A DNA stretch of 64,000 bases from the sequence record LC727695.1; one strand, 5' to 3'. Made by a program: the position numbers and the translations under genes. Each line of letters opens with the position of its first letter. Position 1 is the first letter of the stretch. Shown piece by piece: positions 1 through 53,179 of this stretch. The notes under the pieces were generated by a model. The model was not told the DNA's origin. It saw nothing but the letters and a program-made list of their open reading frames with translations, and did not search any database.

Positions 1-771
1 AATTTCGACTTCTTCTGTTTCAGTGATCTCTGTCTCAGGTTCATCATTGGAACTTTCATCAGCAGTTGTTTGCTCAGCACCGGCTTCTTCAGGAGTTACA
101 TCGTCATCAATACCAGGGACTGCTTCACTTACAACTTCACCAGCATCTAACACTTCATCTGGTAGTGTATCCATGGTTGATGAAACAGGTTCATCACCAG
201 CTGGAAGTTCCTCAGATAGTGGTGCAGGCGGTGGAGTTTCGTCACCAAGTGGGGTTTCTTCAGTGGGGGTTAATTCCACTGCTGTTTCACCAGGTGCTTC
301 TGCAACAGGTACTAGTTCAGTATCATCAGCCGCATCTTGTGCAGCTTCAATAATTTCAGTGGTTGAATCTAAAACCTCTTTACCGCCTTCAGAAATTGTA
401 CCGATTTCTTCAGCGATTTCAGCTTCAGCAACTTTAACTGCTTCTTCGCCTTCTTCGACACTAGTGGTAGCTAGCGGTTCAGGAATACTTTCCTCAACAA
501 CAGTTTCTTCTGGTACAACTTCTTCAACAATTACTGCTGACTTATCAGCAGCATGTGCTGTTTCTTCATGTTCTTCAGCAGAGATAATATCAGTATCTGT
601 TTTAACAGTTTCATTCTCAATAGTTGCAGATGCATCATTATCTTTCTTTAAATCTTGAACTAGTTCATGATCATCTTTAACAGATGTCTCGACTTTGGAT
701 ACATCCTGTTCCACAGCCGTACCATCTTGGTTCTCAAGGCTGGCTACATATTTGTGAATATTTACCATCAT
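1..771 (-). CDS. 5' part of inner-body/head protein (phiKZ gp97-like), runs off the window edge
   Basis: Manual translation from ATG at 771 gives MMVNIHKYVASLENQDG..., a very acidic propeptide-like sequence with no stop before position 1. It shares the N-terminal L/V-x-SLE motif of neighbouring paralogs. Absent from the ORF track because its stop lies outside the window. Confidence 0.8.
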   Translation of the reverse strand, partial: MMVNIHKYVASLENQDGTAVEQDVSKVETSVKDDHELVQDLKKDNDASATIENETVKTDTDIISAEEHEETAHAADKSAVIVEEVVPEETVVEESIPEPLATTSVEEGEEAVKVAEAEIAEEIGTISEGGKEVLDSTTEIIEAAQDAADDTELVPVAEAPGETAVELTPTEETPLGDETPPPAPLSEELPAGDEPVSSTMDTLPDEVLDAGEVVSEAVPGIDDDVTPEEAGAEQTTADESSNDEPETEITETEEVEI

Positions 772-19306: not shown

Positions 19307-19310
19307 CGAA

Positions 19311-19341
19311 ATAAACCCTCCCGTAATGGGAGGGTTTTATG
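19311..19341. terminator. Bidirectional terminator between convergent genes
   Basis: AAACCCTCCC-GTAAT-GGGAGGGTTT. Confidence 0.8.
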
Positions 19342-19409
19342 ATGTGTCGAAGTTTATGTTAGCAGTAATGATCAATTGATAATATTTAATTAGGAATACC
19401 TTCCATTTT

Positions 19410-19778
19410 TTAATATCCTTCATTAAGTAGTTCTGCTAGAGCACGTGCCTGTGAAATATCAGTAGAAGCAAAAACATCAGAAAGATAGTTATCATGTTCT
19501 TTTGCATTCTGACGCAATTCATCCATTAGATGTTTATTAGATACCGCCCATACTTTCCACAGATTTTTATAATCATCATATTTGGGATTATACCCGTCTA
19601 GTGGTGGTTTTCCTTTACCAGCTTTCCAATGGTTGGAGTATATGCGATATCCTTTACAATCTAACTGCCAAGCTTCCTCAATTGTTCTGCCATCAGGAAG
19701 CCTTGCGTAAAGAGCCGAGAATCTTTTGTCACCAACAGATGAACATTCATATCCTCCTCGGCGCTTCCACTGATATAT
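19410..19778 (-). CDS. Uncalled 122-codon ORF with ATA start, possible NADAR-like protein
   Basis: Open frame YQWKRRGGYECSSVGDKRFSALYARLPDGRTIEEAWQ...LLNEGY*; first codon ATA overlaps the upstream stop (TAATA). Confidence 0.6.
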   Translation of the reverse strand: MYQWKRRGGYECSSVGDKRFSALYARLPDGRTIEEAWQLDCKGYRIYSNHWKAGKGKPPLDGYNPKYDDYKNLWKVWAVSNKHLMDELRQNAKEHDNYLSDVFASTDISQARALAELLNEGY

Positions 19779-27751: not shown

Positions 27752-28212
27752 TTAATGATCTGAGATATAGTCGTCTTGAGGCCACTTTCAAGGAAGATAG
27801 TGGTCACATCCTACATCCAAACTTTGGTTATGATAAGTTAACTGAAGATGATACACACTTAGATAGACTATTATCGACAGTAGGGGCAGTAAGACCGTCT
27901 ACAGCAGCACGTTTAACAAGAGAAGCATATCTACTTGATTACGATATCGGTTCACCAGAAAACGGACCCATGTGGTTAAATAAGGTAAATCCTAAAGAGG
28001 ACTTTATCGAAGGTGGGTTGAGAAGGAGACTGACTAGAGATTTCTTCAAGTATAAAGTAGGTAGCTTATCTAATATGTCATTAACTGAATTCTTTGAATT
28101 AGCTTATTCTGAGGTAGAATACATAATTGAATTATGTAGAAATATTACCCATAATGAAGCTGTTAATAACAATAACCAGTTAAATGAATTAAACAAGCCG
28201 TTAACTAAATAA
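27709..28212 (+). CDS. Start-less -1 frame extension (gp76-like; T-type chaperone C-terminus)
   Basis: Frame open from 27697 to the stop at 28212 with no ATG/GTG/TTG before 27970; reachable by -1 slip at T TTT TTT (27709-27715); contains MSLTEFF. Confidence 0.6.
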   Translation, partial: FFYFGGLEVKPDGVVNDLRYSRLEATFKEDSGHILHPNFGYDKLTEDDTHLDRLLSTVGAVRPSTAARLTREAYLLDYDIGSPENGPMWLNKVNPKEDFIEGGLRRRLTRDFFKYKVGSLSNMSLTEFFELAYSEVEYIIELCRNITHNEAVNNNNQLNELNKPLTK

Positions 28213-28223
28213 AAAAAAATAAA

Positions 28224-28259
28224 GACAGGCCCCTCTCCATGTGGAGAGGGGTTTATGTC
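28224..28259. terminator. Bidirectional terminator
   Basis: CCCCTCTCC-ATGT-GGAGAGGGG between convergent ORFs, A-tract upstream. Confidence 0.8.
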
Positions 28260-28262
28260 GCC

Positions 28263-28406
28263 TTACTTACGTGCAAAGCTAGCTACAAGACCTTTGATAG
28301 CTAGAGCGACCATCCAGGCCGTTAACCCCTTCATTGGGCGGATATCAACCCGTTCTTCGATATCCAGATTGCCCTCACTATTGATTACCTCAATTCGTAC
28401 TTGCAT
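28263..28406 (-). CDS. Uncalled 47-aa protein
   Basis: AAGGAG RBS then MQVRIEVINSEGNLDIEERVDIRPMKGLTAWMVALAIKGLVASFARK*; bounded by hairpins. Confidence 0.6.
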   Translation of the reverse strand: MQVRIEVINSEGNLDIEERVDIRPMKGLTAWMVALAIKGLVASFARK

Positions 28407-28463
28407 GGTCTACTCCTTATCAGGGTGGGATATGATATTCAAAAGTCTTTTGATATAAAGATG

Positions 28464-28500
28464 GCATATTACCCCACCAATAAAAGGCGGGGTAATATTT
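28464..28500. terminator. Stem-loop
   Basis: ATATTACCCC...GGGGTAATAT. Confidence 0.55.
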
Positions 28501-28501
28501 A

Positions 28502-28696
28502 TTAAACCATCAGATATCCTAATGGGAATAAAGCAAAGAAGCCATATAAAACAACAAGCAGTGTCTTTTGGCGAACATACCGGGATTTAATACTATCTTT
28601 ATCTAAGTCAAACTTGACATAAAGATAAATCTGATAACTTTTATATCCCATACTAGCCACAAGGGCTATTACTATAAGTTGACACAAAAAGACCAT
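28502..28696 (-). CDS. Small membrane protein
   Basis: 64 aa, two hydrophobic segments. Confidence 0.6.
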   Translation of the reverse strand: MVFLCQLIVIALVASMGYKSYQIYLYVKFDLDKDSIKSRYVRQKTLLVVLYGFFALFPLGYLMV

Positions 28697-28751
28697 AGTG
28701 GGATGCTCTTATTATTAGAGAACAATGATCAATTGTTCTTACATAGCATGT

Positions 28752-28943
28752 CTATTTAATATGCATGATTATCATATTAAATAACCACAACCCTAACATA
28801 AGGGTAAACATACTGCAAATCAAGCCACTTACAATCATTGCTTTTTGTTTGATTGTTTTAGCAGCAGCAAGAAATATAATTGAAGTTATTAATCCACTAA
28901 ATGCAATTAATAGTGGTACTAAAAATAACAATACCCGAGCCAT
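28752..28943 (-). CDS. Small membrane protein
   Basis: 63 aa, two hydrophobic segments, GAGG RBS. Confidence 0.65.
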   Translation of the reverse strand: MARVLLFLVPLLIAFSGLITSIIFLAAAKTIKQKAMIVSGLICSMFTLMLGLWLFNMIIMHIK

Positions 28944-28955
28944 ATAGACACCTCA

Positions 28956-33980: not shown

Positions 33981-34287
33981 CGTTATGTTCAGGTAAGTTC
34001 GCTACGCTTACCCCGCCTCTCGTATTGCAGGCAGCTGCATGTCACCATGCAGACCAGACTATATCTTAACCTTCACCCTAGGTGGTCAGGTCCCTCCCAT
34101 TTCCACTCGCTTGAGTGTACTCCGCGTAACCGGATAGTCGTTGAACGTTCAATCCATTTCTGGAAAGCTTCGCTGCTGATTGTCTCATTGAGATGTCCCA
34201 GCAATTAGAGAGGATTTACTTGACTCTTTCGAGATCAAGCAGGCAATTTGACAATATCCATTCCTGAGAGATGGATGGATATTAATT
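33981..34287 (-). mobile_element. Group I intron without homing endonuclease (307 nt)
   Basis: P1 GGU|AAUU pairs with AAUUGCC with U-G at the splice site; core AAUCAGCAG, GUUCAACGACUA, AAGAUAUAGUC; terminal G before AAG; splicing restores DFHGG-KGVI in frame. Confidence 0.92.
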
Positions 34288-48117: not shown

Positions 48118-49641
48118 CACTATCTTCATACAGCATCGTCAGCGACATGTCTAAAAATCATCTGGGTCATTTTCATATTTAAAAATGAACCCATTAATTG
48201 GTCGACGGTCTTTCTTTTTGAGTTTGCTAGTTACTACTTTCTTTGATAATCCAAGATCGAGATATGCCTGCTTGGCTGATTTGTATTTCAAAATCTCGCC
48301 AGTTTCCACATTTTTCACAAGTGTGGTCTTATTTTTAGCCTGACTATACTCAATGGATTCATCCCAGGTTGGCCATTCTGAACCAACCCGACGTACAATG
48401 TACCTATCCATAATGACTGGATAAATTGCATGTCCGCTAACTTTCAAAGAAATCGTACCTACACTAACCCCTATCGCCTCACTTGCTTTCTTTTGCGAGT
48501 CATATTTCCTGATTTCACCCGTAACGATATCCTTTATCTCAATACCGTCGTGCTCAAGAACAATTCCGTCCGTGTTAATTCCGCGATTTTTCAACATTCT
48601 CATGATCGCGGTATTCTTTGCTGATCCAATATAACCGGTTTTGATTGCATTTCCATGCAACACATTTTCACTCTGGGTTACCCATTCTAGGTTATCGGGT
48701 ACTGTATTGTCACGATCACCATCTATGTGGTTGACCACTTTCTCATTGATGGTGTTATCGTATTCAATAAATGTCAGTGCAGCTACACGGTGTAAATTCG
48801 TTCCTACATAGGTGCCATCATCTCGACGCAATCCAAGATCTCTGTATCCAGTTGTCGCCAAACTTGTTAATTTAGCTGAACCTTCAAAAAGACTTATGAC
48901 CTTGAGTTCATCATTGATTGCATAGCAGGTAAAACTAGGGATGAAATAATATCCTGGGAAGGTGGGAACCTCCAATCCTTCTTCCGGGAATTTCCAAATC
49001 AAGTTTCTAGGATGAATATTGTCTTCATCTCCATCAGAAAACAATATTTCGCAGCGACTAACAAACTCTAATGGCGCATGCCAGCCTTTAAAACACACTG
49101 CTATCAACTTAGTAACATGAATGGGTAGTCTATGCCATGGTAATTCAAGAACGTAATGTCGGTTTATTGGATCTATCAATTTATCCAAAAATCGATCATA
49201 GACTAACCCATCCAGAGTCAGTCTATAACGCCCGAATGTACCGGGAATCACAATTTCTCTCGATTTGGGTATACGACTGTAAATAAACACATATCCTCCA
49301 TTGGAAGACATGTCGCTGCTGTACCGTCCACTTAATATCTCCCGACATTAAGTAACTGCTCTAGCTTTCACTAGATGGTGAGACTATATCTTCTTCCCAG
49401 AGGGAAGCCTTCTATTTCGGACCACTTGGCCCTACTCTACTCCCTTGGCTGCTTTCGCAGTGGTTTCGATAGTCGTTGAACGTTCTTCCTATCTCGCCTC
49501 ACGGCAATACGTAGAAGCTTCGCTGCTGATTGTCCAATCCTAACACTTTTCAAACCGTTACATTTTAGCTTTCGCTATCTGCTTTGGTAGTTAGGCTCTA
49601 AGGAGGTTCCAGCAATTAAGAAGGTTAGGAGACCAATTAAA
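48118..49641 (-). mobile_element. Group I intron (1524 nt) carrying an HNH homing endonuclease
   Basis: P1 GGAGAU pairs with GUCUCC with U-G at the splice site; core AAUCAGCAG, GUUCAACGACUA, AAGAUAUAGUC; terminal G at 48118. Confidence 0.93.
48151..49311 (-). CDS. Intron-encoded HNH homing endonuclease (gp56-like)
   Basis: LHRVAALTF...VNHIDGDRDN...NLEWVTQSEN HNH motif; two C-terminal NUMOD1-like repeats. Confidence 0.9.
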   Translation of the reverse strand: MSSNGGYVFIYSRIPKSREIVIPGTFGRYRLTLDGLVYDRFLDKLIDPINRHYVLELPWHRLPIHVTKLIAVCFKGWHAPLEFVSRCEILFSDGDEDNIHPRNLIWKFPEEGLEVPTFPGYYFIPSFTCYAINDELKVISLFEGSAKLTSLATTGYRDLGLRRDDGTYVGTNLHRVAALTFIEYDNTINEKVVNHIDGDRDNTVPDNLEWVTQSENVLHGNAIKTGYIGSAKNTAIMRMLKNRGINTDGIVLEHDGIEIKDIVTGEIRKYDSQKKASEAIGVSVGTISLKVSGHAIYPVIMDRYIVRRVGSEWPTWDESIEYSQAKNKTTLVKNVETGEILKYKSAKQAYLDLGLSKKVVTSKLKKKDRRPINGFIFKYENDPDDF

Positions 49642-50904
49642 ATCTCCGTCGAAATCTGCGTTTGGAGCCTTAAGGCATAAAACTGACATGCTGATAGAAT
49701 TATCATTAATGTCATCTTTTACTTTAGTAATAAAGAACTGCTGCGTAGATCCACGTTGAAGCGTTGGATTTCGGTGAAAAGTACAACCCATCCCTTTATA
49801 AGGGGCTGCTTCTGCAATTAGCTCTTTAAATAGATCTGCAATGATTTGGTTATATTGAAGTACATTCTCATATACAAATGAGAATGCTTCACGAGTTGTC
49901 ATGTTAAACTTTGCTTTTAGTTTATTGGTTAGATGATACTTTAATAATTGACAACCTACCCCCCAAGGGATATGTAGTTCATCATAATCATGCGGGTCAC
50001 TAATAGAAGTGATTACTGCACGTGCCGTAGCGTTGAGACGAGCACCAAACATGTGACGCCGAGCAAGACCAGGCTTTTGAGCAATTCGTGATTTTGCGTA
50101 GATCTCGTAGAACTGGCCATATAGTCTTAGTCCTCGCATAGTCCTATTCTGAGCTTTAATTGGACTAAGTGGTACAGATGATGCATCAATACTAGCGAAG
50201 GTTAAGGTAGCATCAATTGCTGCTTCAATTGGTTTATCTAAGTAAGTACCAGATGTGGTTGATTCTGCTACGAAACAGAGTTTAGAAGGAACTGGTAAAT
50301 ATTTAGGGAATAACTTATCTTTATTCTGAGCAACGAATTGAGCGAATTCGGATTTATTATTAGAGATAATATTTGCATCTAGTAGGAATTGGAAGATCTC
50401 ATTGAAATTATCAATGAAGTGATTTAATCCTCTTTCAAATCCTCGATGCAGTAGCCTATCTACTTTCCTGCGTGTTTCCTTAGAACCAATAGATTCTACA
50501 TCGTATCGATAAGAAGTATCAGTTAGATATGCTAAGAAATCGAATTCTTTAGTTACTAGATATCCGGTTAGCATAATGATTAAACGTGGGTTAATTAGGC
50601 TACGTACATGTTTTGGTGTACGAACCCACATTGATGGTTCGATAGGGCGGCTAGAAGTATTGACAACTGGAGTATTACAAATATCACAGATTACTCCGAG
50701 TTTATGTGCGTCTTCGATTGCTCGACAATCACAGCTTACACTACTTTCAATTGCTTCTGAATCTTGGAAATGAGAATAGAAATGTCTATCAAATTCTTCT
50801 TTCTCATCTGAGTTACTCGTATTGTAATCATTGGCATAAATTCGTTTACCCGTAAATTGATCATGTACTTCATCATGATCAACAACTTTGGCATAAAGAC
50901 CCAT
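49642..50904 (-). CDS. nvRNAP beta-prime N-terminal (catalytic) subunit, exon 1 (gp55-like); spliced product 488 aa
   Basis: CDC...CDIC zinc ribbon, RRHMFGARL, HRNPTL, PNADFDGD. Confidence 0.93.
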
Positions 50905-50940
50905 ACCAAACTCCTATTTATCGATTAACAAAAAAAGGAG

Positions 50941-50971
50941 ATATAAGCGGCCCCCGAAGGAGCCGCTATAT
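50941..50971 (-). terminator. Terminator between chmA and nvRNAP beta-prime gene
   Basis: AGCGGCTCC-TTCG-GGGGCCGCT on minus, followed by U-rich tract. Confidence 0.8.
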
Positions 50972-51298
50972 CAGTTTTTACAATGGACCACCAACGGAGC
51001 CTGGCCCGATCCTAGCGTCGTCTACAAAGCTTAACCTCCGCTCTTCTCTGTAGCGCTCTGACACTAGAACCTTTTACCATCCATTGTAGTTTTTTGATCA
51101 CACGTCACCTTTTGAGTAACTCCTTTCGGTTAAGTGATCTATCATCCTCGTGTAGTGATAGGTCGACCTAGACTAAGTCCACTAGTCGATTACTTCACGG
51201 AACCTACTCCTAACCGTTATCACTGAAGTGAACCGGGTCGCAGTATTAGAATCGGGATGTTACTTATTTAACATCCCTATCTACCGAGGTATTTCCTA
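50972..51298 (-). ncRNA. Candidate structured RNA in the chmA 3' region
   Basis: No ORF of 60 codons or more; several nested helices with G-U pairs and a GAAA tetraloop; ends at a terminator hairpin. Confidence 0.55.
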
Positions 51299-53179
51299 TT
51301 AGTACCAGGTACCCGGTGCGTTATAGGAAGGAGCGCCGTAAGTTTGACCCATGCTGCCAGCCATACCAACTTGTGCACTACCAGAAACAGCCATGTTACC
51401 CATACCGGTGTAACCAGCGAAGCGCTGTTGACCGAAGTTGGTAATTAGGTTTTCCATGGTTACAGTTACACCAGCTGCTGCTGCTGCGGCATCCATTGCG
51501 GTGATGAATTTCGGGTTAAAGGTTAGACGACGAGCACGACCAGTATAGGTAACGTTACCTAGGTACATCTTGTCGAAGCCTTTACTGTTATTCATACGAC
51601 GCACAATGTGGTCATTACCTACCTGAGTAGCATACCAGGTCTTCCACTCTTGGTCATTACCTTCAGACATGTTCATGGCACCTAGAACGTCGAGATCACG
51701 ACGGTCGCTTAGTTCACCATGCTCATCAGTGTAGTGACCGAGGTCTACTTCATGATGGTTGTCAAAGATAATCGGACCAGCTTCAGCTAGATTATAGAAC
51801 TGACGGAAATCAGTGCCGTATAGGTTAGTTAGAGCTTGGAAGATCAGACTAACTGCACGAGCTTGGTTTACGCCACCAGCTGCATCTAGGACGACTTGCT
51901 CAATAGCTGAGTTGTCGCCCATTGGATCGATATCGATCTGGAATGCAGGGTTCTGGTTAACCATCTTGTTCATTAGCATTACGAAGTTGCTGTCGTCTGC
52001 CATGAATGCTTCGGTGCGAGTTTCAATCGCTTTACCTAGCTCTGAGTAATAACCAAGTGCACCAATATCACGCATCTTGCTAGTAGCGATCTTCGGCATT
52101 AGGGTACGAGCCCATGCCTGGGATGCAGTTGCACGATACGCATTACCGAGTGCGAACAGCCACATTTCTAGAGTCCATGCTTGGATCCAGGATGCCTTAC
52201 GAACGTCAGTGATAACGATGTAAGGAGTGAACTGCGGAGGTAGAGCTGCACCAGGTAGAGTTACGCCAAACATACCTTGTTGCTGGCCAGTGGTCGGAGT
52301 CCAATGTAGATCTACGAATAGACTAACTTGGTTTAGCTGGCTATCGGTATCATAGAACTCGTTCTCAGGTACGTTGGTTTTCTTACCACGGCTAGTGGAG
52401 ATGACCATGTCAGAACGGATCGGATTACCACAGCTATCTTTAACCGGAATACCATTGTAGTCTAGGTTGCAGGTAAGCTGTTCGTTTTCTGCTTTGATGT
52501 GGGTCGCAATAGAGAACGGAGTCTCATTGTTACGACGTGCAATAGCATCTTCACAGATGTTAACAGATTCAACTAGTAGGTTCTTAACAGCTAGTTCATC
52601 TTTGAAGTCGAAGTCAGCATACACTGCACGTGGACCGGCAGATAGTACTTCTAGACCAGGGATGTTGTAACGGTTCCGTAGGAACTCGCCGATCTTGCTC
52701 CAGTATTGAGCAGTGAATACATCACGCGGTAGTACCTTCTCTTCAATGATGTCATCAGTTAGACCATTGTTGATTTTGTGGGTACGGGGACGGATGCGAG
52801 TACCAGGTAGGTTATCGAGTACTAGAGTACGAACGAATGCCTTCATGGAACCATTGATATCTTTAGCTAGTTTAACAATGAGTAGACCAGCCATACCAAC
52901 TTGTTGCGCATCACGATCGAAACGATGGATATCGAAGTCATCAGGTAGGTCCTGATGGCGGATTGCTTCTTCTTTTACTTTAGTGAATACTTGTAGGGCA
53001 TCTGCTGAACGAGCATCAGAGCCATCTAGTCGACCAGAGCGACGCATTAGATGGTTAATGCCAGTAGTAGACCCAGGCGCGCCAGTAGGACGTTGAGCTT
53101 GACGCTGTGCAGTGGGTTGCGGAGCAGGAGCAGTAGCTTGAGTTTGAACGGTGCCGATTTCATTTTCGTTAACAGCCAT
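51299..53179 (-). CDS. chmA: Chimallin, major phage-nucleus shell protein (gp54-like, PhuN)
   Basis: 626 aa, disordered N-terminus, [23 protein letters not shown] and FGQQRF motifs; directly upstream of the nvRNAP gp55-like gene; strong codon bias. Confidence 0.92.

Follow-up and report, generated by a model that had tools for sequence, protein, structure and literature searches.

A structured RNA in the 3' untranslated region of the phage nuclear shell gene chmA that appears to behave as an exchangeable cassette

The 3' untranslated region (3' UTR) of chmA, the gene for the phage nuclear shell protein chimallin, was found to carry a structured non-coding RNA element of about 330 nt which, as judged from sequence comparison, appears to be an inserted and horizontally exchangeable cassette. 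The window, i.e. the whole stretch of DNA analysed (64,000 nucleotides of sequence record LC727695.1), comes from Pseudomonas phage PA7, a relative of phiKZ. The 371 nt 3' of the chmA stop codon share 100% identity with Pseudomonas phage PA7 and 95.7% with phiKZ, where the counterpart is flanked by PHIKZ054 (nuclear shell protein) on one side and by PHIKZ055 (nvRNAP subunit) on the other. An earlier note on this DNA had proposed a structured non-coding RNA made together with the shell protein, and a conserved RNA co-transcribed with chmA, folded from the sense strand and matching no known family, was indeed recovered; the note had overlooked the cassette-like horizontal exchange, an apparent relic of a gene end, the modular architecture and the existence of another type of element at this locus. 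The locus includes the following features, where "pos" counts downward from window 51300 on the minus strand.

51299..53179, minus strand: chmA (chimallin, phage nuclear shell protein), Pfam PF25677 Chimallin_Phikzvirus, with the element in its 3' UTR
50930..51289, minus strand (pos 12-371): whole conserved block, element plus terminator, with limits set by conservation
50930..50972, minus strand: ancestral intrinsic terminator of chmA, with a 14-bp stem and UUCG loop followed by UUAU...U7 (U7 at 50930-50936)
50902..50915, minus strand: start signals of the gp55-like gene as read from the sequence, Shine-Dalgarno AGGAG at 50911-50915 and ATG at 50902-50904
49591-50904, minus strand: ORF of the gp55-like gene for the nvRNAP beta-prime N-terminal part, with a weak match to Rpb1 domain 2; its phiKZ homologue is annotated as PHIKZ055

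Residues 1-626 of ChmA cover positions 1-627 of the PF25677 profile (1120 bits) and the conserved Tyr is present at the C-terminus, such that chmA is complete and therefore not interrupted by the element. Between the chmA stop at 51299 and the terminator hairpin (50940-50972, then U7, as had been noticed earlier) lies a GC-rich stretch devoid of ORFs. High conservation extends from 12 nt past the chmA stop to the U-tract, and sequences beyond these limits are not conserved between genera. The U-tract is separated from the ATG of the gp55-like gene by 25 nt containing nothing but the Shine-Dalgarno sequence, which leaves no room for a promoter and agrees with the earlier failure to see one ahead of the beta-prime gene. 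The element has no promoter of its own, starts 12 nt past the stop codon and ends at the terminator of the upstream gene, as 3'-UTR-derived RNAs do; an intrinsic terminator stands between the structured element and the gp55-like gene, as it would in an attenuator.

In phiKZ, PHIKZ054 is first in its operon and is transcribed from a primary start site of the early class and a secondary one of the middle class (PMC8244752), chmA is present in many transcription units, and the terminator motif consists of a hairpin followed by TTAT (PMC10914365), to which the terminator described here conforms. No promoter was found in 201phi2-1 for gp107, the homologue of gp55 (PMC11512511). Given this, and the transcription context of chmA, expression of the polymerase gene probably requires transcription to read through the chmA terminator. 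A CUCC sequence 3' of the terminator stem could pair with GGAG of the gp55-like Shine-Dalgarno sequence in read-through RNA (window 50905-50940, minus strand). Among four aligned sequences this pairing, predicted by RNAalifold, was full in PA7 and phiKZ and partial in PA1C and PhiPA3, and it could damp translation of the polymerase subunit.

The minimum free energy (MFE) of the element is -130.8 kcal/mol, compared with -100.3 +/- 5.8 kcal/mol for dinucleotide-preserving shuffles (z -5.2), and none of 100 shuffles folded as well; the comparison with shuffled controls proposed in the earlier note thus came out in favour of a real fold. The higher GC content seen earlier also held, being 45.8% in the element versus 37.1% in the window and 25-39% in most other non-coding gaps. 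Among 24 such gaps, equal GC richness was found only in the two regions with group I introns. G-U pairs are confined to the sense strand of chmA, hence the RNA that folds is the one transcribed in the chmA sense. Three modules are recognized, the first a four-way junction, the second a three-way junction that includes a GAAA hairpin, and the third a branched rod; the individual helices below were read from the sequence.

51146..51289, minus strand (pos 12-155): 5' module, a four-way junction closed by Pa, CCUCG/CGAGG (51285-51289 with 51146-51150)
51247-51283, 51205-51245 and 51155-51198, minus strand: arms H1, H2 and H3/H4 of the 5' module, respectively
pos 24-32 with 39-47, minus strand: helix GGGAUGUUA/UAACAUCCC
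51096..51139, minus strand (pos 162-205): central three-way junction, made of H5, the GAAA hairpin and hairpin H6
pos 162-167 with 200-205, minus strand: helix GAUCAC/GUGAUC (H5)
pos 172-179, minus strand: CC-GAAA-GG hairpin
50979..51088, minus strand (pos 213-322): 3' branched rod with H7, H7b, H8, H9 and H10
51088-51080 with 50987-50979, minus strand: rod helix H7, UACAAUGGA/UCCAUUGUA
nested within the H7 rod, minus strand: helices CUAGUGUC/GACGCUAG and CUACAGAG/CUUUGUAG

All the helices named in the earlier note were found where it had placed them, although two of them, ACUUCA/UGAAGU and CUAUCA/UGAUAG, compete with better-supported helices (the tip of H2, and H3), and CUAUCA/UGAUAG is broken in HPP-Temi and W10-2. 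In the 5' module, the junction strands GGUUCC (51199-51204) and UACA (51151-51154) are invariant, 98.9% of the cells for its 47 pairs are paired, and five pairs show compensatory double changes. The MFE fold obtained independently for PhiPA3 has the same four-way layout, and R1, a covariance model of the 5' module, matches PhiPA3 with 40 bits (E 1e-9). The three-way junction, with joining strands UUAA, A and GU, is the best-conserved stretch across three genera. In the rod, H7 is 100% paired and changes from A:U to G:C in the PA1C group, while H8 covaries at two pairs; the rod also includes a hypervariable patch at pos 229-247, and its 5' strand has an alternative partner at pos 303-314, with three violations.

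Full-length homologues were found in 54 phage records, all from phages of Pseudomonas and of P. aeruginosa wherever the host species is named. They comprise phiKZ-like phages (95-100% identity), the group of PA1C, PS119XW and HPP-Temi (85-87%) and PhiPA3, in which the core blocks are kept and one arm is expanded by about 150 nt. A model of 111 pairs derived from 13 sequences had 98.3% of its cells paired. The covariation across the chmA 3' regions of relatives that the earlier note had asked about was detected, with double changes at nine pairs as compared to 4.4 +/- 1.3 in shuffled controls (1 of 500 as high), in a comparative set that is narrow, comprising three sequence types and a weak Phabio match, and in which many of the counted changes were inherited together. 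When partners were slid by 1-3 columns, 0-2 double-change pairs were obtained and pairing fell to 34-40%. With PhiPA3 and Phabio (matched weakly, E 0.34) included, the 3' part gave 11 double-change pairs versus 2.4 +/- 1.2, in an alignment fitted to model R2 and thus favouring it, and six of these 11 are among the 14 pairs of the three-way junction. A second copy of the motif pair GUAGGUU ... UAUC-ACG within the PhiPA3 expansion (L002 2600-2760), on which R1 closed, suggests that the H3 arm has been duplicated internally.

In every relative chmA is followed by the terminator and then by the RNA polymerase gene, but the spacer between the two genes varies in length, as follows.

L006 (metagenomic phage), 82 nt; Noxifer, 84 nt; D6, 87 nt
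PA7 and phiKZ, 394 nt; PA1C, 427 nt; Psa21, 435 nt; PhiPA3, 515 nt
Phabio, Viktualia and 201phi2-1, 634-874 nt, in which additional small ORFs are present

The short spacers of D6, Noxifer and L006 contain only a terminator, of the same form as that of the PA7 element and also found after chmA of Psa21. The terminator is thus ancestral, with the element placed between it and the stop codon. Psa21 and D6, whose ChmA proteins are 84% identical, differ by an insert present in Psa21 only. This insert has a different sequence from the PA7 element and folds well (z -3.3). The PA1C-like phage phiHQ combines the two types: the phiKZ-type three-way junction, rod and terminator are kept (179 bits with model R2), whereas the phiKZ-type 5' module is replaced with a homologue of the Psa21 insert. 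The coordinates are listed below.

L014 1194-1707: phiHQ chimera, Psa21-type 5' module joined at GAUCAC to a phiKZ-type remainder
L007 4756-5130 (Psa21), L014 1194-1505 (phiHQ) and L018 2400-2570 (Ralstonia phage RP13): Psa21-type module

The Psa21-type module has the conserved strings GCCAAAGUC, ACUUACGGUGA and UAAACCGUAU. Three helices of its core show six compensatory pairs among the three sequences, and UACGGU in a hairpin loop could pair with a downstream ACCGUA to give a pseudoknot. The core is found in the unrelated 171-kb Ralstonia phage RP13, where there is no chmA or RNAP context and it ends 1 nt upstream of a tRNA-Leu(UAA) gene. From the phiHQ swap and the RP13 copy it follows that the modules are portable and that at least one works outside the chmA context. 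No Rfam match was obtained for the Psa21-type module, and kinship with the phiKZ-type 5' module was rejected by nhmmer and by R1, a CUUAA followed by a GAAA hairpin being all they have in common.

The 3' UTRs of Phabio (L010 4753-5036), Viktualia (L011 4762-5017) and 201phi2-1 (L008 4759-4983) are structured over 150-280 nt and end in a UUCG terminator of their own, after which a small ORF precedes the polymerase gene. UAAGU(U/C)GUAA opens the stretch after the stop codon in all three; a GGGAUC-GAAA-GGUCCC hairpin comes next in Phabio and 201phi2-1, and a CUAAAU-CUGG string resembling CUAAUACUG of the phiKZ type is present in Viktualia and 201phi2-1. The three-way junction of Phabio has the layout of the phiKZ type. 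Pfam and PHROGs searches with the ORFs at this site in the three phages gave nothing informative; for 201phi2-1 gp106 a match to the PhiKZ major capsid protein family was seen, but it was weak and below threshold.

Both element types are accompanied by what may be the remains of an older gene end. The Psa21 insert is separated from the terminator by a decayed copy of the final ~36 nt of chmA, which scores 28-29 versus 19.3 +/- 3 for shuffled sequences (1-2 of 300 as high). The corresponding feature in PA7, immediately ahead of the terminator region, forms the 3' strands of the rod.

50978..51004, minus strand: probable relic of an older chmA 3' end, 27 nt reading P-G-S-V-G-G-P-L-stop

Aligned with the chmA end of Noxifer, the phiKZ-type relic scores 26-28 versus 17.5-18.9 +/- 2.6-3.2 for shuffled sequences (3-5 of 300 as good), and the true end of PA1C ChmA reads GSVGTLY-stop. 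These alignments suggest, with modest confidence, that the insertion supplied a new gene end and that the older one was left to decay. The possibility that the whole spacer is a decayed tandem copy of the chmA 3' end was rejected, as similarity in tblastn and blastn searches was limited to the last ~30 nt. On integration, islands in tRNA or tmRNA genes restore the 3' end of the gene they target, and an intact gene end upstream of the insert with a decaying copy downstream is the arrangement seen here too; unlike such islands, the insert is only ~330 nt long and RNA-structured, and no integrase or att-like repeats were found.

Relationships among the elements contradict those of the flanking proteins, as is evident from the pairwise identities.

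PA1C and PhiPA3: ChmA 63%, gp55 81%, element 69-73%
PA1C and PA7: ChmA 48%, gp55 65%, element 87-88%

At the nucleotide level, PA7 and PA1C share 61.9% identity in chmA and 64.8% in gp55, compared with 86.7% in the element, and neither the 11 nt before the element nor the spacer after it is conserved. Transfer of the element between the Phikzvirus and Pawinskivirus lineages, which have a common host, or rapid remodelling in PhiPA3 would account for this pattern. Transfer is favoured, since phiHQ displays direct cassette exchange; selection alone, without transfer, could also lie behind the high conservation between genera. Within the phiKZ species the element is less conserved (95.8% identity) than its flanks (99.4% and 98.7%) owing to the hypervariable patch in the rod. 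Two haplotypes of this patch (window 51054-51072 with 51008-51020), connected by compensatory changes, occur in phiKZ-like phages. The version of the PA1C group is also present in PA7, SL2, T2P and W10-2, and the other in phiKZ, KTN4 and NK1; recombination between genera or diversifying selection could explain the two haplotypes.

As to function, the interpretation preferred here, which is held tentatively and at somewhat less than an even chance, is that of a self-contained RNA acting through its fold and supplied at high dose by the chmA transcript. As there is no space for a promoter of its own, the element is transcribed as the tail of the chmA messenger, which would start at an early and a middle promoter as in phiKZ. 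As part of the early transcript whose expression is strongest, the RNA would be supplied in large amounts from the first minutes of infection onward and would work through its folded shape, most likely as a binding platform or a decoy for a protein or RNA of host or phage. It might persist as a stable 3'-UTR fragment shielded by its own structure and the terminator hairpin, and switching of the terminator would not be its primary role. Since all the carriers found infect P. aeruginosa, the best guess is a host-specific accessory role in take-over or counter-defence.

Two accounts of the stretch can be given little weight. That it is a chance structure in a functionless spacer appears very improbable in view of the z value of -5.2, covariation above that of the controls, and 87% identity as against 62-65% in the neighbouring genes. 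Several GenBank records annotate "hypothetical protein" features under the match; one or more small protein genes are nonetheless hardly credible, because no ORF above 33 aa overlaps the element (the earlier note had seen no long one), the longest being of 24-33 aa with GTG or TTG starts, because phages that are 96-99% identical differ there by frame-breaking single-base indels, and because substitutions track base-pairing and not codons. A third account, a selfish mobile RNA or its remnant, such as a degenerate intron or ribozyme, is unlikely. Such an RNA would spread between co-infecting phages to no benefit of the phage, its structure being kept for its own propagation or merely not yet decayed. 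An uneven distribution among close relatives, a duplicated gene end as the mark of insertion, incongruent phylogeny and module swapping are all in line with it, as is a GC content like that of the two group I introns that the genome also carries, which show that mobile RNA elements are active in PA7; a purely selfish element would moreover be expected to display the same structural conservation. No group I or II signal was detected at E up to 10 over 651 nt, however, whereas scores of 75-84 bits were obtained for the true introns; chmA needs no splicing to be intact, there is no endonuclease or reverse transcriptase gene inside the element, and the compensatory changes have accumulated since the lineages split, implying lasting selection on the fold.

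The remaining account places the element in cis control, with the fold setting either terminator read-through into the gp55-like gene or the stability, translation or location of the chmA messenger, and thereby the ratio of shell to polymerase. It was the second option of the earlier note, in the form of an attenuator or antiterminator. The missing promoter room in the 25 nt between U-tract and ATG, the lack of a promoter found for 201phi2-1 gp107 (PMC11512511), the presence of chmA in many transcription units (PMC10914365) and the CUCC pairing with the Shine-Dalgarno sequence all speak for such control, as do the two mutually exclusive partners of the rod 5' strand just upstream of the terminator, neither of which touches the terminator itself. 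On the other hand, D6, Noxifer and L006 have the same gene order with nothing but a terminator in 82-87 nt, in phiHQ the 5' module is swapped and the terminator unchanged, and in RP13 the other module type stands beside a tRNA gene. No conserved competitor of the 14-bp stem was found, the sole candidate (GGCUCC) making six pairs and being deleted in PhiPA3, and the size of the element and its conserved junctions distant from the terminator exceed what attenuation needs. Cis control is thus regarded as rather unlikely, and a self-contained RNA fits the sequence data better than a terminator switch would.

That the element belongs to no known family, with no group I, tRNA or tmRNA signature as already stated in the earlier note, was supported by several searches. 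Rfam 15, including riboswitches, small ribozymes, 6S, RNase P, GOLLD and ROOL, gave no match to the element at the gathering threshold when the window and the relatives were searched, and a permissive search gave only terminator-like chance matches (E >1). ARAGORN found no tRNA or tmRNA in the window or at the homologous loci. Identity as a group I intron (RF00028) was rejected, with no match at E up to 10 over 651 nt compared with 84 and 75 bits for the true introns of the window, no similarity to these two introns, none of their P/Q/R/S core strings, and no interruption of a reading frame, ChmA spanning the whole Pfam profile. A degenerate group I intron was rejected as well, since a P4-like long-range pairing, CGACC/GGUCG, is broken twice in W10-2, which supports hairpin H4 instead. 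By eye, nine RsmA-type GGA motifs were counted, about the chance level, and as regards a CRISPR repeat mimic only 7 nt were seen to match the type I-F repeat. Models R1 and R2 detected no second copy of the element in the window or the relatives, and exact-pattern scans of IMG/VR, JGI metagenomes and GTDB genomes returned only PA7, PhiPA3 and Psa21 besides chance matches. No description of the element was found in the literature searched, nor is it mentioned in the dRNA-seq, Grad-seq and ONT-cappable-seq papers on phiKZ, of which the Grad-seq one included inspection by hand for non-coding RNAs.

Among known RNAs of Pseudomonas phages, the closest in arrangement are the 3'-UTR-derived non-coding RNAs 3'UTR_PHIKZ298 of phiKZ and ncRNA1 and ncRNA2 of PAK_P3 (PMC8545117; PMC10914365). 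Like the element, these follow a stop codon and lack a dedicated start site; they share the terminator of the gene and are conserved in relatives. They differ in being 90-210 nt long with one or two hairpins, as opposed to ~330 nt with multi-way junctions; the element is, in addition, modular and exchanged between genera, and as a discrete RNA species it is putative. With the group I introns of PA7 (window 34035-34263 and 49359-49663) it shares GC richness, a length of a few hundred nucleotides, structure, mobility and patchy distribution, but not the family match, core strings, frame interruption and endonuclease gene. GOLLD (RF01998) and ROOL (RF03087) are large orphan RNAs of phages and prophages with complex folds, of about 600-800 nt, encoded as separate genes and often beside tRNA genes. 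A complex phage-borne fold is common to them and the element, and the Psa21-type module adjoins a tRNA gene in RP13; the element is, however, smaller, part of the chmA 3' UTR and without a match in Rfam. Attenuators and riboswitch leaders likewise place a structured RNA and an intrinsic terminator directly upstream of a read-through-dependent gene, although here no conserved antiterminator was found, the structure is optional and swappable, and no known aptamer class is matched.

chmA is the first and most critical gene expressed by nucleus-forming phages, and phiKZ is both the model of their biology and a candidate for phage therapy. A complex conserved RNA on the chmA messenger has gone unannotated in more than 50 genomes and was missed by three transcriptome studies. 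At the RNA level it could take part in host take-over or in evading defences, or else it could contribute to how the chmA messenger is handled; if it has a defined partner, it would join the small number of large phage RNAs whose role is known. Relatives with, without and with chimeric elements provide a natural experiment, and the cassette behaviour is a hint that phages exchange structured RNAs in much the way they exchange accessory protein genes. It is conceivable, if doubtful, that the phiKZ-type and Psa21-type elements represent an undescribed class of mobile structured RNA cassettes, which would insert at the 3' end of very highly expressed phage genes or next to tRNA genes, restore the end of the gene and pass from one co-infecting phage to another. 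Such cassettes might be catalytic, or might use RNA to take over the host or counter its defences in a manner suited to the host species, and would then be the RNA counterpart in nucleus-forming phages of protein "morons".

Last, other non-coding regions of the window contain two group I introns (RF00028). One (74.8 bits, window 49359-49663, minus strand) is located where the gp55-like nvRNAP ORF ends, with an HNH/NUMOD endonuclease ORF (window 48151-49311, minus strand) coming next, this arrangement being the PA7 counterpart of PHIKZ055/056; for the phiKZ introns, long-read data gave no evidence of splicing (PMC10914365). The other (84.2 bits, window 34035-34263, minus strand) lies inside a 322-nt GC-rich non-coding gap. 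Two further stretches, at window 19307-19777 and 27752-28955 (471 and 1204 nt), have no ATG-started ORF of at least 90 aa and are of ordinary GC content, 36-38%.
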